From the sequence record PP496441.1: a DNA stretch of 64,000 nt; one strand, 5' to 3'. The position numbers and the translations under genes are program-made. Positions within the stretch are counted from its first letter, which is position 1, and every line of letters begins with the position of its first letter. The notes beneath the pieces were generated by a model, which ran no database searches, had not been told where the DNA came from, and saw only the letters and a list, made by a program, of their open reading frames with translations. Positions 23,517 to 28,755 of this stretch are shown one piece after another.

Positions 23517-24302
23517 ATGAGTGCTGTACCTAATCGTGTGTCCCTAGTGGACAAGCGCATCTTCAACGGAAAGGCTGATGTCAACGCCTTGCTACCGCTT
23601 CGGTATCCGTGGGCCTATGACGCCTACGTGAACGCGAACAAGAACCACTGGCTTCCCGGCGACATCCACCTCGATCTGGATCGAGTCAACCATGAACATC
23701 AGTCGTACTGGCCTGCTGTCAGCCGGTTCCTGATCAGCGTAGCCCAGCGCGCCGAGATCGATCGACAGCACATGCTCTTCGTGTATCGGGCCACCACGGC
23801 GCCCGAGGTTCGTCAGCGCTTCCTCCGCATGGGGCAGGAAGACACCATTGCCATCATGCTGGCGCAAGACATGGGGCTGGCACTGGAAGACTTCATCCCG
23901 TCTCCAGAGGTGGTGTTGTACAAGACGGAGAAAGCCTATCTGGCCGGGCTCATGGAACTGATCGAGCGTAAGCTCTTGTCCGTGGCCGAAGGCAAGTACA
24001 TCCTCGAAGAAGTGCCGGGGGTGCACCAGAATATACGCAAAGCAGTTGAGAACATCCACCGCGACGTGGACTCTCAGTTGGACTTCCTGTTCACCCTGCT
24101 GCGCACCTTCCTTGGCGAATGCGAGGTCAGCTCCTACCGGGGTTGCAACACGCAAGCGTTCTGGCAGAGCAGCAACCAGTACCACGCCCACCTGAACTCG
24201 ATTGTTCTGAACGTTTTGACGGGGGCGCCGGTTACCCCTACGCCGTATCAGACACAGGTGGTCGCAGACAACCAAACCAAAGACACACTGACCTGGGACT
24301 GA
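23517..24302 (+). CDS. degenerate NrdB paralogue lacking metal ligands and radical Tyr
   Basis: KRIFNGKAD..LLPLRYPWAY...NHWLP N-terminus; EEAxH replaced by EDTIA; RDESxH replaced by RDVDSQ; ends LTWD. Confidence 0.8.
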   Translation: MSAVPNRVSLVDKRIFNGKADVNALLPLRYPWAYDAYVNANKNHWLPGDIHLDLDRVNHEHQSYWPAVSRFLISVAQRAEIDRQHMLFVYRATTAPEVRQRFLRMGQEDTIAIMLAQDMGLALEDFIPSPEVVLYKTEKAYLAGLMELIERKLLSVAEGKYILEEVPGVHQNIRKAVENIHRDVDSQLDFLFTLLRTFLGECEVSSYRGCNTQAFWQSSNQYHAHLNSIVLNVLTGAPVTPTPYQTQVVADNQTKDTLTWD

Positions 24303-24304
24303 CT

Positions 24305-25279
24305 ATGACCGTTCTTACTCACGTAAACCCGCACGAACATGAGTGGGCGTTGGAAAAGACCTTGGCGTCAAACTCGAACCATTGGTTGCCCCAAGAGATT
24401 GGACTGTCCACCGACATCCTGCAATGGAAGACCGGACAGTTGAGCGACGACGAGATGCGCATGGTCAAGCGTAACCTCGGGTTCTTCTCCACCGCTGACT
24501 CGCTGGCCGCGAACAACATCATCCTCGGCACTATACGCCACATAAAGAACCGTAACTGTCGCCACTACCTGTTCCGACAAGCGTATGAAGAGGCATTCCA
24601 CACGGAGTCCTACGCGTACGTGATCGAGAGCCTTGGTTTGGATCAGGGTGAGATCTTCAACGCGTACAACGAGATCGACTCGATCCGGGCCAAGGACGAA
24701 TTCCTTCTGCCGTACATCGAGGTGCTGACCGATCCGGCGTTCCAAGCGGACACCATCGAGAACGTCCAGATCCTGCTCAAGTCACTTTTCGCTTTCGCGT
24801 GCATTATGGAAGGTCTGTTCTTCTACGTCGGCTTCGTCCAGATGCTGTCGCTGGGCCGTCGCAACAAGCTGCCCGGCTCCTCGCAAGAGTTCCAGTACAT
24901 CCTGCGCGATGAGAGCGGCCACTGCAACTTCGGCATCGACCTGATCAACACGATCAAGCGCGAGTACCCAGGCGTGTGGACTGCGGAACTCCAGAAGGAG
25001 TGCACCGACATGTTGCGCACCGGCGTTGACCTGGAGCAAGCCTATGCGGTAGATACCCTGCCCAACGGTGTGCTGGGTCTGAACGCGGACAACACACGCC
25101 AGTACCTGGAGTTCATCGCGGACCGCCGCTGCATTCAGGTGGAGCTGCCAGTACAGTACAACCAGAACGACAACCCGTTCCCGTGGATGTCGGAGATGGT
25201 TGACTTGAACAACGAGGAGAACTTCTTCGAGAAGAAGGTGCTTGCGTACCAGCAAGCCGCCGGACTGGAGTGGGACTAA
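24305..25279 (+). CDS. nrdB: class Ia ribonucleotide reductase beta subunit
   Basis: NHWLPQE, FFSTADS, EEAFHTESY, MEGLFFY, RDESGH, NFFE..V.AYQ...WD; start at ATG 24305. Confidence 0.95.
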   Translation: MTVLTHVNPHEHEWALEKTLASNSNHWLPQEIGLSTDILQWKTGQLSDDEMRMVKRNLGFFSTADSLAANNIILGTIRHIKNRNCRHYLFRQAYEEAFHTESYAYVIESLGLDQGEIFNAYNEIDSIRAKDEFLLPYIEVLTDPAFQADTIENVQILLKSLFAFACIMEGLFFYVGFVQMLSLGRRNKLPGSSQEFQYILRDESGHCNFGIDLINTIKREYPGVWTAELQKECTDMLRTGVDLEQAYAVDTLPNGVLGLNADNTRQYLEFIADRRCIQVELPVQYNQNDNPFPWMSEMVDLNNEENFFEKKVLAYQQAAGLEWD

Positions 25280-25280
25280 C

Positions 25281-25382
25281 ATGATCTATACGTGTCCGAA
25301 GTGTAACCGGTTGCATTCAGATGGGACAAGCAATTTCGAGCTAGTCGTTCTGTGCCGGTATTGCAACCCACTGAAGGGGTAA
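25281..25382 (+). CDS. 33-aa CxxC-CxxC microprotein (not in track)
   Basis: MIYTCPKCNRLHSDGTSNFELVVLCRYCNPLKG; GGAG RBS inside the nrdB end; followed by a terminator. Confidence 0.5.
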   Translation: MIYTCPKCNRLHSDGTSNFELVVLCRYCNPLKG

Positions 25383-25393
25383 TACGGTCCGGT

Positions 25394-25427
25394 AAATAGG
25401 GGAGTGAGCAATCGCTTCCCTATTTTT
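25394..25427 (+). terminator. rho-independent terminator
   Basis: AAATAGGGGAG...CTTCCCTATTTTT. Confidence 0.75.
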
Positions 25428-25444
25428 ATGTCTGGAGTTTGATA

Positions 25445-25687
25445 ATGGCTACCGAGACTAACGACATCTTCGTTGTAATGGCAGACGTGCAGTATGAATC
25501 GTCCACACCGGTTAAAGCCTTCCGGGTAAAGCGTACCGCCGAAGCCTTCCGCAAGAAATGCGAGAAGTATCAGGAGGGTTATTCCGCTGGATTCAATGAT
25601 CAGAAGTGGAAGGACAAACACCCGGCAGGTATCAACAACTACAACGCCGACAGCTACTCACTGGAAGTTATCCCCTTCGTGGGCTAG
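25445..25687 (+). CDS. hypothetical protein, paralogue of 26543
   Basis: FVV.A...YE...P.K.FR and HPAG shared. Confidence 0.7.
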   Translation: MATETNDIFVVMADVQYESSTPVKAFRVKRTAEAFRKKCEKYQEGYSAGFNDQKWKDKHPAGINNYNADSYSLEVIPFVG

Positions 25688-25696
25688 GAGTCTTCT

Positions 25697-26131
25697 ATGA
25701 AGCGGCCAGTGTGGATCACTTTGACCGGTAAGACCAAGAAGCACAACGTCCCCTACCTGATTGATCAGCGCTACGTGCGTGAGTGGATGCACTGGGGACT
25801 GAAGATGTATCCCACGCAATTCCCACCTCCACCGGATACACTGGTAGGTTCCCAATCTACTTCGTGGAAGTTCTGGGACATTCGCAAGTTCTACCTGTGG
25901 AGCGTTAAGTGCACTTGCATCTACACCGGTGAAGTGCACCACCTTGGCGGCGGTTCGTGGCTGACCAAATCTCAAGCGAAAGTCCTGCAAGACGATGGGA
26001 TCGAGCTGGGCATCTTGTTGAATACCATTCCAGAGTGGGTGGTAGATATGGGACTGCTCAAGACTTGGTGCTTCGTACAGGACCTGTTCGCGTTCCGTAA
26101 TCCCTTCCCTCAACGGGAGAAGAACAAATGA
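25697..26131 (+). CDS. hypothetical Trp-rich protein
   Basis: AGGAG RBS; stop overlaps next start. Confidence 0.7.
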   Translation: MKRPVWITLTGKTKKHNVPYLIDQRYVREWMHWGLKMYPTQFPPPPDTLVGSQSTSWKFWDIRKFYLWSVKCTCIYTGEVHHLGGGSWLTKSQAKVLQDDGIELGILLNTIPEWVVDMGLLKTWCFVQDLFAFRNPFPQREKNK

Positions 26132-26358
26132 CTGCTCGTTCAGGCATTACCCATTCCTACAAGGAAACCAAGACGGTAGACATCACTAATCTGGAGTCCC
26201 CCGGTCGTGCCATGTCCAACGGCAAGATCGTGATCAGTGTGACGGATAAGGGAGAGTCCACCATCGAGTGTACCTTTGGTGGGCATCAGTGTGGTATGGT
26301 GACTGATAAGTCTTCACTCTACCAACTGCGAGACGCCCTTACTGATCTTCTGGACTAG
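26128..26358 (+). CDS. hypothetical protein
   Basis: ATGA coupling to upstream gene. Confidence 0.65.
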   Translation: MTARSGITHSYKETKTVDITNLESPGRAMSNGKIVISVTDKGESTIECTFGGHQCGMVTDKSSLYQLRDALTDLLD

Positions 26359-26365
26359 GTGATCT

Positions 26366-26539
26366 ATGACCAACATAGTCAACTTCCCGAAGAAGGATAC
26401 CACTGAGCCGGAGAGTACTGAGCTTGTGCTGAACGATCAGCAGATGGATGAGTTCGAACGTAATCTGGAGCAGCGGCCTCCCGAAACCAATCTGTCACTT
26501 CAGCGCTTGCTAAGGCGCCCTACCCGCTGGAAGGAGTAG
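26366..26539 (+). CDS. 57-aa protein resembling the C-terminal half of DUF1778/TacA antitoxins (not in track)
   Basis: AGGTGA RBS; LVLNDQQMDEFERNLEQRPPETNLSLQRLLRRPTRW. Confidence 0.65.
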   Translation: MTNIVNFPKKDTTEPESTELVLNDQQMDEFERNLEQRPPETNLSLQRLLRRPTRWKE

Positions 26540-26542
26540 ATT

Positions 26543-26842
26543 ATGCCGGACTGCTTTGTGGTACATGCCGAAGCGATGTACGAAGCCCCTGTACCCATCA
26601 AGGTGTTCCGGCGCAAGTACAAAGCCAAACTCTTCATCAAAGAACTACGCGCGTATCATGCGCAGCGTCCCGTCTTACCCTCCACGTTCAACGAGTTAGG
26701 TGTGGGGTATCCCGAAAGCATCTACGCCGCGCACATGGATGCGTACCACATGGATCACATGGACTGGTCTAGTTCCCATCCGGCGGGTATGGCCGGAGAA
26801 GGTGCTGACGACTTCACATTCACCCAATTACCTTTGGAATAG
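26543..26842 (+). CDS. hypothetical protein, paralogue of 25445
   Basis: Shared motifs; AAGGAG RBS. Confidence 0.7.
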   Translation: MPDCFVVHAEAMYEAPVPIKVFRRKYKAKLFIKELRAYHAQRPVLPSTFNELGVGYPESIYAAHMDAYHMDHMDWSSSHPAGMAGEGADDFTFTQLPLE

Positions 26843-26845
26843 AAA

Positions 26846-28012
26846 ATGAACGATGATCTGAAAATCACAGAGGTTAACTCTGTGAAGGAATACGATGAAC
26901 ACGTAAGAAACCTGCTGGTTACCTTGTTGGGGCTCGGTTCTTCCGCCACCCGCAACGATCAAGGTACCCGCAAGCTCGGCGCCACGTCGATCAGCTTCAA
27001 CCTGCTGTCGATGTACCCCTCGATCCCGATGACCACGCTACGCCCGATCTCGTGGGCCAGTATCCTCGGCGAGATGCTGGGTTTCATCCGTGGCGAGACC
27101 AACGTCCAAGCGTTCAAGGAACTGGGCACCAACGTCTGGAACGCCAACGCCAAGGAACCCGCGTGGAAGAACAACGCACTGGCGCCGAATGAGGGTGACC
27201 TCGGGCCGATCTACGGCAAGCAGTGGCGCAAGTGGACGGACACCAAATTGCTACACGAAAGGTCCAGCCTTCGAGAACTTGGCTACACACGCATGGGACA
27301 CGTGAGCCGGTTGACTGGTGATCTTCCCCATGAAGGTCCAACAGGTGACGGCCCTCTGTATGTGTGGGTGAAGGAGGTTGACCAGTTGATGGAAGCCCTG
27401 AACCGCATCAAGGCCAACCCCAACGACCGTCGCGCTGTCATCTCGGCGTGGAATCCCGGTGACATGGACTTCATGGCTCTGCCGCCGTGCCACGTTATGA
27501 TGCAGCTGACCACGGTGCCTTACGCCCAGCACAAGTACGGCTCTTACACAGATGGTGCCAGCGACTTCGAGATCGACTTCAACGAGAACTACCCGGAGCA
27601 GGTGGTTTCGGATACCGTCGAGCCGAATAGCAGCGGAGAGACTGTTCCCCGGTACGCGCTCAATCTGGTCGTGACTCAGCGCAGCCAAGACACCCTGCTC
27701 GGTCGGGCGTATAACATCCCGGCGTATGCCACCTTGCTTCGCCTGTTCGCTCACCTGTTGGAAATGGCGCCGGGCAATCTGGAGTTCAACGTCGGCGACC
27801 AGCACCTGTACAGCAACCATGGGGCAGCCGCCGACGAGGTAACTTGCCGAGAAAGTCTGGACAAGGATGAGGAAGGCGAAAAGCTATTCCAACTCTCTAT
27901 CGTCGGCGTGGACAAGTTCGAAGATCTGGACACCCTCACCGCCGACAACTTCATTCTGACTAATCAGGTTACGCATGATAAGTTGGAATCCGACACCAAG
28001 ATGACTGTGTAA
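26846..28012 (+). CDS. thyA: thymidylate synthase with two insertions
   Basis: DLGPIYGKQWR, NPNDRR, SAWNP, ALPPCH, QRSQD..LG..YN, GDQHLYSNH. Confidence 0.93.
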   Translation: MNDDLKITEVNSVKEYDEHVRNLLVTLLGLGSSATRNDQGTRKLGATSISFNLLSMYPSIPMTTLRPISWASILGEMLGFIRGETNVQAFKELGTNVWNANAKEPAWKNNALAPNEGDLGPIYGKQWRKWTDTKLLHERSSLRELGYTRMGHVSRLTGDLPHEGPTGDGPLYVWVKEVDQLMEALNRIKANPNDRRAVISAWNPGDMDFMALPPCHVMMQLTTVPYAQHKYGSYTDGASDFEIDFNENYPEQVVSDTVEPNSSGETVPRYALNLVVTQRSQDTLLGRAYNIPAYATLLRLFAHLLEMAPGNLEFNVGDQHLYSNHGAAADEVTCRESLDKDEEGEKLFQLSIVGVDKFEDLDTLTADNFILTNQVTHDKLESDTKMTV

Positions 28013-28023
28013 GGGGAATCGCC

Positions 28024-28755
28024 ATGAGCACCAATCCACCAATCAACGCCCGCATCCTCAACCTGAAACCCCGTTCCGTTCAAGTCTACGACTTGATCTT
28101 GGACGACACGGATGATCGCACACTGCCCGAACAGATGCGAAGCGTGCTTCAAGGCATCTTCGACGACCATCCTGTAACCGAATATGGTGAGAAGAGTACG
28201 GTCATCGACACCGAACACCTGACCAAAGCAACCATCGTCGCTGTCATCTACGACCCGAGCATTCGCGTTGCCTATCTGGTCGGGCAGGAACGTCGGGACG
28301 ATATGATCTCCGGCGCTTTCCCCGGCAAGCCGATGAACCCCGACTTCTACCTGAGTACTGATGCTCAAGAGTGGACGTCGGCGTTCTTCAACATCAACGG
28401 CAACTGTCTTAAAGACCTGACCGAAGATACGTTGTTCGGCTGGTTCGCCAACGCCATCGAGCGCGGCAAGTCTGACGGCACCAGTGATACCTACAATACG
28501 CTGGGTATCGTGCAGCCCGGTCTGCAAGGCATCAAGAAGGGAATTCCGCTGATGTCCCTGATCGAGGCAGGTATCCTCCCGCACACTGCGTACTGGTCCG
28601 ATCCTCAGGCACCCGAATACGTCAGGTGGCTGGCGAAACAAGGCCAAGCTGCTCAGCGTAGTATTGGGATCAGGGCTACGGAAGATGTGGCAGCCCTGCT
28701 CGACGAGAAGCAGTCGTACGAATCTATCAACCCAAAGGAAGAGAAGGAGTCCTGA
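28024..28755 (+). CDS. hypothetical protein
   Basis: AAGGGG RBS; typical codon usage. Confidence 0.7.
   Translation: MSTNPPINARILNLKPRSVQVYDLILDDTDDRTLPEQMRSVLQGIFDDHPVTEYGEKSTVIDTEHLTKATIVAVIYDPSIRVAYLVGQERRDDMISGAFPGKPMNPDFYLSTDAQEWTSAFFNINGNCLKDLTEDTLFGWFANAIERGKSDGTSDTYNTLGIVQPGLQGIKKGIPLMSLIEAGILPHTAYWSDPQAPEYVRWLAKQGQAAQRSIGIRATEDVAALLDEKQSYESINPKEEKES

Follow-up and report, generated by a model that had tools for sequence, protein, structure and literature searches.

A short accessory protein of phage vB_PpuM-Pori-4 resembles the toxin-neutralising tail of DUF1778 antitoxins

[quoted passage not shown] In the DUF1778 antitoxins (TacA, AtaR and KacA; PF08681), the C-terminal segment folds onto the GNAT toxin while the N-terminal ribbon-helix-helix (RHH) binds the operator, and a TA antitoxin is generally specific to its own toxin. 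Host TA toxins are also inhibited by phage proteins: Dmd of phage T4 inhibits the RnlA/LsoA toxins and TifA inhibits ToxIN. Both are small early phage proteins and, to our knowledge, neither is a sequence relative of the cognate antitoxin.

The toxin-wrapping region of KacA has the order strand, helix, proline-rich linker and helix; lying over the surface of the toxin, it hampers acetyl-CoA binding and prevents dimerisation (PMC6698736). GNAT TA systems occur in Pseudomonas, an example being PacTA of P. aeruginosa (PMC9561280). Counter-defence by orphan antitoxin-like proteins of lytic phages has been established for DarTG, in the form of AdfN and other DarG-like proteins (PMC11257639, bioRxiv 10.1101/2023.12.14.571748, PMC13309987), and the DarTG paper describes type II orphan antitoxins as hard to detect by bioinformatics. 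Our literature search found no paper in which a GNAT/DUF1778 system defends against phage, nor one describing a phage inhibitor of such a system.

In this study, we report the computational analysis of gp28, a 57-residue protein of phage vB_PpuM-Pori-4, and propose that it may be an accessory mimic of an antitoxin, acting to neutralise GNAT toxins of the host, a reading to which we give about an even chance. gp28 combines the two marks of an orphan antitoxin, namely the lack of a cognate toxin in the phage and a likeness to the neutralising part of a host antitoxin. Like AdfN and the DarG-like proteins, it is a stand-alone relative of a host antitoxin in a lytic phage without the toxin, with a patchy occurrence among close relatives; unlike those proteins, which are enzymes that reverse the modification made by the toxin (type IV), it would be a stoichiometric type II binding peptide. 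The role proposed for it, direct neutralising of a host TA toxin during infection, is that of Dmd and TifA, from which it differs in having a tail that appears recognisably related to the neutralising segment of an antitoxin.

Genomic position of gp28 and its conservation among sister phages

Phage vB_PpuM-Pori-4 (PP496441.1) is a 202.6-kb lytic myovirus from Estonia, isolated on P. putida KT2440/PaW85. The window, by which we mean the whole stretch of DNA analysed, is 64 kb long and corresponds to the start of the Pori-4 genome (the first 64 kb of PP496441.1), with 100% identity at the same coordinates. A literature search under the names of this phage and its sisters found nothing on them.

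The gp28 gene (Pori4_00028) occupies positions 26366..26539 of the plus strand, including the stop codon, and encodes 57 aa between an ATG start and a TAG stop. An earlier note on this DNA, made from the letters alone, had described an unannotated 57-aa ORF with a good ribosome-binding site between two genes. The ORF is present as described, running from ATG to TAG with AGGTGATC before its start, and the note's reading of residues 20-55 is identical in translation; the word unannotated was mistaken, as the PP496441.1 record carries the ORF as hypothetical protein Pori4_00028. The Shine-Dalgarno-like sequence AGGTGATC (26357..26364, plus strand) lies immediately 5' of the ATG and overlaps the final two bases of the stop codon of gp27 (Pori4_00027; 26128..26358, plus strand, 76 aa). 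gp28 starts 7 nt past the gp27 stop and ends 3 nt ahead of the start of the next gene, gp29 (26543..26842, 99 aa, a member of phrog_37665), all three being on the plus strand. They belong to a plus-strand run of small genes between the genes for the ribonucleotide reductase (RNR) small subunit and thymidylate synthase.

Over this region, identity with the eight sister phages of the collection is 88-97%. By tblastn, gp28 was found in four of the nine phages; the Pori-4 and Amme-1 proteins are identical, and those of Voja-6 and KoPa-5 are 93% identical to them. The distribution is accordingly accessory and patchy, in a mosaic slot. In Voja-6 and KoPa-5, which lack gp26, gp27 and nearly all of gp29, the tail ORF stands directly after gp25 and AGGTGA is kept before its start, a sequence related to the Pori-4 signal despite the different upstream gene. 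The tail ORFs of Voja-6 (L003:2501-2689) and KoPa-5 (L024:1501-1689) each encode 62 aa, compared with 57 aa in Pori-4. Their added C-terminal residues are identical to the final residues of gp29, which suggests a deletion that fused the tail ORF and gp29 in these two phages.

Between Pori-4 and Voja-6, the gp28 ORF differs at 16 of 171 nt, the codon changes being 11 synonymous and 4 non-synonymous. Codons 17-57 hold 10 of the nucleotide differences, and there the encoded residue is altered solely at the last codon. gp28 is therefore under strong purifying selection with or without gp27 upstream and, because Voja-6 and KoPa-5 lack the neighbouring genes, this selection holds in two gene contexts. 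It is a real gene, more than a chance ORF.

The slot from 25445 to 26842 of the window, between the RNR small subunit and thymidylate synthase genes, is a hot spot of mosaicism. The order gp25-gp26-gp27-gp28-gp29 is found in Pori-4 and Amme-1, and Voja-6 and KoPa-5 have gp25 and the tail ORF only. In Aura and Peetri an unrelated 109-aa gene replaces gp27 and gp28 and no gp25-type gene is annotated; the same 109-aa gene is found in Illi-2, where neither a gp25-type nor a gp26-type gene is annotated. The mosaic junctions are gene boundaries with similar ribosome-binding-site sequence. The variable slot is flanked by paralogs, gp25 (25445..25687, 80 aa) and gp29, which have an N-terminal motif in common and both match phrog_37665 and phrog_10284 (unknown function).

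Several further features of the surroundings were recorded. A strong terminator-like hairpin with a 14-bp stem followed by a T run lies at 25394..25425 (plus strand), in the gap between the RNR small subunit gene and gp25, and given this hairpin the small-gene cluster that holds gp28 may be transcribed separately; a search of window positions 25200..28100 gave no sigma-70-like promoter. Pori4_00023 (23517..24302), a hypothetical protein gene between the RNR large and small subunit genes, encodes a short motif that, by eye, recurs near the N-terminus of the RNR small subunit, and its product may be a second, divergent R2-like protein. The thymidylate synthase gene (26846..28012) is unusually long (388 aa), and its length across the sister phages (1167, 1155 and 1098 nt) suggests a variable insertion. 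Past the window, PP496441.1 has annotated QueC-like, QueE-like and GTP cyclohydrolase genes, a set that suggests a 7-deazaguanine DNA modification pathway, as well as an annotated 'CRISPR/Cas system associated protein' and a phage sigma factor.

Comparison of the gp28 tail with DUF1778 antitoxins

Residues 20-57 of gp28 (26423..26536, plus strand) align with the C-terminal toxin-neutralising region of DUF1778/TacA antitoxins. The sole Pfam hit of gp28 was TacA1 (PF08681), with E 0.075 and 13.4 bits, short of the gathering threshold of 21 bits. The match joined gp28 residues 17-51 to the portion of the model that follows the RHH (positions 44-77 of 80), and in a default PF08681 scan of 10 family members only gp28 and its 93%-identical twin were returned. 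No signal for gp28 was obtained in PHROGs, NCBIfam, PADLOC or a single-sequence search of the PDB, a single-sequence search of 1.84 billion proteins returned no DUF1778 protein, and the full-length family profile had no antitoxin match in the PDB.

Profile comparisons were performed using two query profiles, of which A3 comprised the tail only (gp28, the Voja-6 form and the tails of four relatives) and A1 comprised ten relatives with gp28 left out. The target, alignment A4, consisted of 11 genuine DUF1778 proteins in 95 columns, with divergent examples from Lelliottia, Azotobacter, Pantoea, two Rhizobium, E. coli and Klebsiella together with four metagenomic members. The DUF1778 search for A4 was a tblastn of a plasmid collection with a 34-residue stretch of the TacA1 peptide as query. 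It returned annotated DUF1778/GNAT pairs by the thousand, with enterobacterial plasmids by themselves holding thousands, and an overlapping or adjacent GNAT gene accompanies every A4 comparator with complete annotation. A further antitoxin locus of 658 bases, from the E. coli invasion plasmid pINV (CP046677.1 8680-9337), contributed to none of the alignments, HMMs or comparisons.

Among 177,635 PDB sequences, the best match of A3 was 7ak8_G, a 39-residue 'TacA1 antitoxin peptide' (E 0.28), aligned collinearly over residues 5-38. Using hhalign, A3 matched A4 with a probability of 91.3% (P 9.7e-7, score 36.5, 37 columns) over A4 columns 58-94 of 95, thus reaching the DUF1778 C-terminus, and A1 matched the same region with a probability of 80% (P 1.4e-5, score 34.0). 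In 400 column shuffles per query the maximum scores were 20.0 for A3 and 25.6 for A1, compared with the observed 36.5 and 34.0, and the reversed profiles scored 8.8 and 11.4, respectively. Correction for the selection of the best among about 25,000 Pfam families raises the P-values to ~0.02 for A3 and ~0.35 for A1.

An HMM of our own was also built for DUF1778. With filters off, it gave all ten tail-bearing family members 11-15 bits at positions ~58-93, compared with about -1 bits for paralogs that have the N-terminal module only; gp27 did not match it. Among 853 ORF pieces of the window, gp28 was the sole outlier (E 0.004; next best 0.95). The invariant or near-invariant columns of the DUF1778 tail (a hydrophobic residue, Leu, Asp, Pro, Leu and Trp) correspond to L20, L34, E35, P38, L48 and W55 of gp28, among which E35, P38, L48 and W55 are invariant across the phage family and L20 and L34 are not.

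The earlier note had read a TacA/DUF1778 tail in residues 20-55, and this likeness is borne out at the profile level, for residues ~20-57, by the hhalign probabilities, by shuffles that score far lower and by 7ak8_G as the top PDB match. A profile match to DUF1778, which it had named as a check, was obtained in the comparison with A4, and the single-sequence Pfam match stayed below the gathering threshold. From these alignments, the gp28 tail is probably related to the DUF1778 neutralising segment; we rate the relationship as probable and not certain because of the P-values corrected for family choice.

What gp28 has in common with the DUF1778 antitoxins is the C-terminal ~37 residues, with the same order of elements (an extended stretch, a helix, a proline turn, a second helix and a near-terminal Trp), the near-invariant columns, and a spacing of 17 residues from Pro to Trp, as in most A4 comparators. 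It differs from them in that only ~19 residues precede the tail and there is no RHH, so that no operator binding is expected; in that it has no adjacent GNAT toxin gene, being followed by gp29; in its score below the Pfam threshold; in its occurrence in lytic phages only; and in having relatives with the tail fused to an unrelated module of three strands plus a helix. By the family's own measures of threshold, RHH and adjacent toxin, gp28 lies outside PF08681, and the neutralising segment is what the two have in common.

The main rival to an antitoxin mimic holds that the likeness of the tail is convergent, or ancestral but since repurposed, and that gp28 acts on another target (a host protein, nucleic acid or a gp27-type module) in a function unrelated to TA. 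We regard this explanation as unlikely, yet it is the one to be weighed most seriously. With a stretch of only ~37 residues of amphipathic helix, convergence with the DUF1778 tail is possible, and the very basic C-terminal end of gp28 could bind many partners. The sub-threshold PF08681 match and the failure of sequence searches to return a DUF1778 protein agree with such a reading, but the alignment is collinear, extends in each family as far as the C-terminus, covers all the near-invariant columns and far exceeds its controls, and the likeness is seen also in the profile that leaves gp28 out. A gp27-type module as the target sits poorly with the conservation of the tail in Voja-6 and KoPa-5, where gp27 is missing, which argues that gp27 is not an obligate partner. 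Two further points are on the side of another target: the N-terminal module of the relatives has no known fold or family, so nothing independent indicates TA biology, and no GNAT TA system has been described in the laboratory host.

The gp27/gp28 protein family

When 1.84 billion representative sequences were searched exhaustively with phmmer, one real relative of gp28 emerged, P0002 (115 aa, E 6e-5), and P0002 as query returned nine further clusters. All of these lie on metagenomic contigs, the largest of 278 kb, which we take to be phage, and one is in a viral contig collection; the related contigs were obtained from samples SRR23468717, SRR30726809, SRR19576320, SRR13512891 and ERZ27252475. 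No family member was found in 185,579 bacterial and archaeal species (one genome per species), and the family, which is small, was met only in phages and large phage-like contigs. Comparison of the window with the related contigs (136-278 kb, otherwise unrelated) showed only the module and one 28-residue match in common. Candidates rejected in these searches were P0003, a 2137-aa repeat protein with a low-complexity, repeat-driven match; a tblastn match of gp28 in Rhizobium phage P9VFCI, which is antisense and due to chance; and tblastn matches in plasmids, which are likewise chance and lie only inside MFS transporter genes.

Most relatives carry the tail at the C-terminal end of a protein of ~115 aa, and eight such fused relatives were found. 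gp27 and gp28 were each compared with P0002 as separate pieces: gp28 residues 11-55 are 56% identical to P0002 residues 66-113 (E 3e-15), and gp27 residues 31-76 are 37% identical to P0002 residues 21-66 (BLASTP, E 4e-10), which makes gp27 a homolog of the N-terminal module of the ~115-aa relatives. Since gp27 and gp28 match the two halves of P0002, Pori-4 has a two-gene form of the fused family. In the family alignments, gp28 residues 1-19 (26366..26422, plus strand) consist of a short N-terminal extension followed by an acidic linker, of which the extension (~10 residues) has no counterpart in the fused relatives and the linker aligns with their inter-module linker.

The N-terminal module also occurs without the tail. 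Two N-module-only genes, P0006 and P0008, each lie directly upstream of a full-length paralog, and gp193 of the P. aeruginosa jumbo phage PaBG (L029:2887-3144; 85 aa) belongs to the gp27 family, with 41 bits on the family HMM, and consists of the N-module only, with neither a tail nor an adjacent tail ORF. The tail, for its part, is found fused in the ~115-aa proteins, as a separate gene after gp27 in Pori-4 and Amme-1, and alone in Voja-6 and KoPa-5; both modules thus occur fused, side by side and alone. The description of gp28 as an orphan half in the earlier note consequently fits Voja-6 and KoPa-5, where the tail stands alone, and does not strictly fit Pori-4, where gp27, the homolog of the relatives' N-terminal part, adjoins it. 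Taken together, the patchy slot, the sharing with unrelated large contigs and the absence from cellular genomes form the usual pattern of a counter-defence gene.

The structure of P0002 was predicted with AlphaFold2 on the family alignment (mean pLDDT 71, pTM 0.45). The model of the N-terminal module, with block-mean pLDDT of 80-89 over residues 21-70, has strands at 22-28, 34-40 and 43-49 and a long helix at 51-68, so that its predicted fold is three strands plus a helix and not a ribbon-helix-helix. In agreement with this, the N-terminal part of the fused relatives did not align with the RHH columns of DUF1778 in the comparison of A1 with A4. The tail was modelled at lower confidence as a linker followed by helices 82-94 and 97-108, parted at the proline; this order of helix, proline and helix is that described for the wrapping region of KacA. 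Foldseek searches of the model in the PDB and BFVD gave nothing significant, the best matches having E 0.12 (TM ~0.33) and, to uncharacterised phage proteins, E 0.002.

The modular relationship raises the alternative that gp27 and gp28 together are one two-subunit protein, like the fused 115-aa relatives, and that the tail of Voja-6 and KoPa-5 is a leftover; on this view the working unit would be the N-module with the tail, whatever it does. The end-to-end alignment of gp27 and gp28 with the P0002 halves, the eight fused relatives and the adjacent, translationally close position of the two genes are what such a protein would predict. A leftover is harder to reconcile with the Voja-6 and KoPa-5 ORF, in which the start and the ribosome-binding site are preserved and nine synonymous changes in the tail stand against one conservative replacement, and the N-module-only genes (P0006, P0008 and PaBG gp193) show that the modules circulate separately. 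We therefore judge this alternative improbable, and it is compatible with an anti-toxin reading of the tail.

Partner toxin search and proposed function

Neither the window nor the other 138 kb of the Pori-4 genome contained a GNAT-toxin-like ORF. The statement of the earlier note that neither an RHH nor a GNAT toxin is seen here holds in the DUF1778 and GNAT HMM scans and in the P0002 model. The genome does encode a GNAT-domain acetyltransferase, Pori4_00176 (PP496441.1 150998..151822, minus strand, L027:36998-37822; 274 aa), which matches Acetyltransf_1 with E 1.6e-13 and is unlike the toxins partnered with DUF1778 proteins. It scored -2 bits on the GNAT-toxin HMM, lies ~125 kb from gp28 and is conserved in full in eight of the nine phages, four of which lack gp28; Peetri matches its first ~100 residues only. 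It was rejected as a partner toxin on these grounds. In the relatives, an unannotated gene of 172-183 aa is found directly downstream of the family gene. This neighbour gave no GNAT signal (hhalign probability 0.2%) and was rejected as a partner toxin for that reason; it has no homolog in the window, and it matched no Pfam family in two of three cases, the third having an unrelated sub-threshold match to DUF5648.

It could be supposed that gp28 counteracts or regulates an enzyme that the phage itself encodes, as one half of a TA-like pair, whether Pori4_00176, which does have a GNAT domain, or the 172-183-aa protein, whose gene directly follows the family gene in relatives. The distance of Pori4_00176, its HMM score and its intact state in four phages without gp28, together with the downstream neighbour's lack of a GNAT signal and of a window homolog, render this very improbable, and gp28 is not part of a phage-borne TA pair. 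Least probable of all is that gp28 is a non-functional fragment of a broken 115-aa gene. Fused relatives do exist, the ORF is very short and five of the nine sister phages lack it, but gp28 begins at a start codon of its own behind a strong ribosome-binding site, carries an additional N-terminal extension and shows a clear synonymous excess between two lineages in two gene contexts.

An accessory antitoxin mimic directed at host toxins is the reading that we prefer. The earlier note had likewise proposed an antitoxin mimic, one that would disarm a GNAT TA abortive defence. According to this proposal, the phage family would have retained a DUF1778-type tail, without the RHH, in the predicted shape of a short extended stretch, a helix, a proline turn, a second helix and a basic end with an invariant Trp. 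Early in infection, host shut-off would mean that the labile host antitoxin is no longer supplied, and the phage-made tail would settle on a host GNAT tRNA-acetylating toxin at the surface that binds the antitoxin. The toxin would be neutralised stoichiometrically and translation would continue, with the TA operator unaffected. We infer the binding of gp28 to a GNAT toxin, the timing of this binding and the role of such TA systems as phage defence in natural hosts. A survey of the chromosomal TA systems of P. putida (KT2440/PaW85) makes no mention of GNAT, acetyltransferase, DUF1778 or RHH (PMC7280312), and the laboratory host may thus lack the target of gp28.

More broadly, and tentatively, with somewhat greater doubt than belief on our part, phages may have taken from a type II antitoxin the disordered tail with which it grips its toxin and used it, as a free 57-residue peptide or on a new scaffold, to silence host GNAT tRNA-acetylating toxins. 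If the proposed function of gp28 is true, it would be the first phage inhibitor of the GNAT/DUF1778 TA family and would extend orphan-antitoxin counter-defence beyond the enzymatic DarG-like proteins. It would also be indirect but pointed evidence that GNAT toxins are a barrier to phages, and the first direct sign of DUF1778/GNAT systems as anti-phage abortive-infection modules. As a natural minimal inhibitor, gp28 would mark the segment that is sufficient for neutralising, and its case suggests that comparing profiles of the tail alone may be a way to recognise proteins of this kind.
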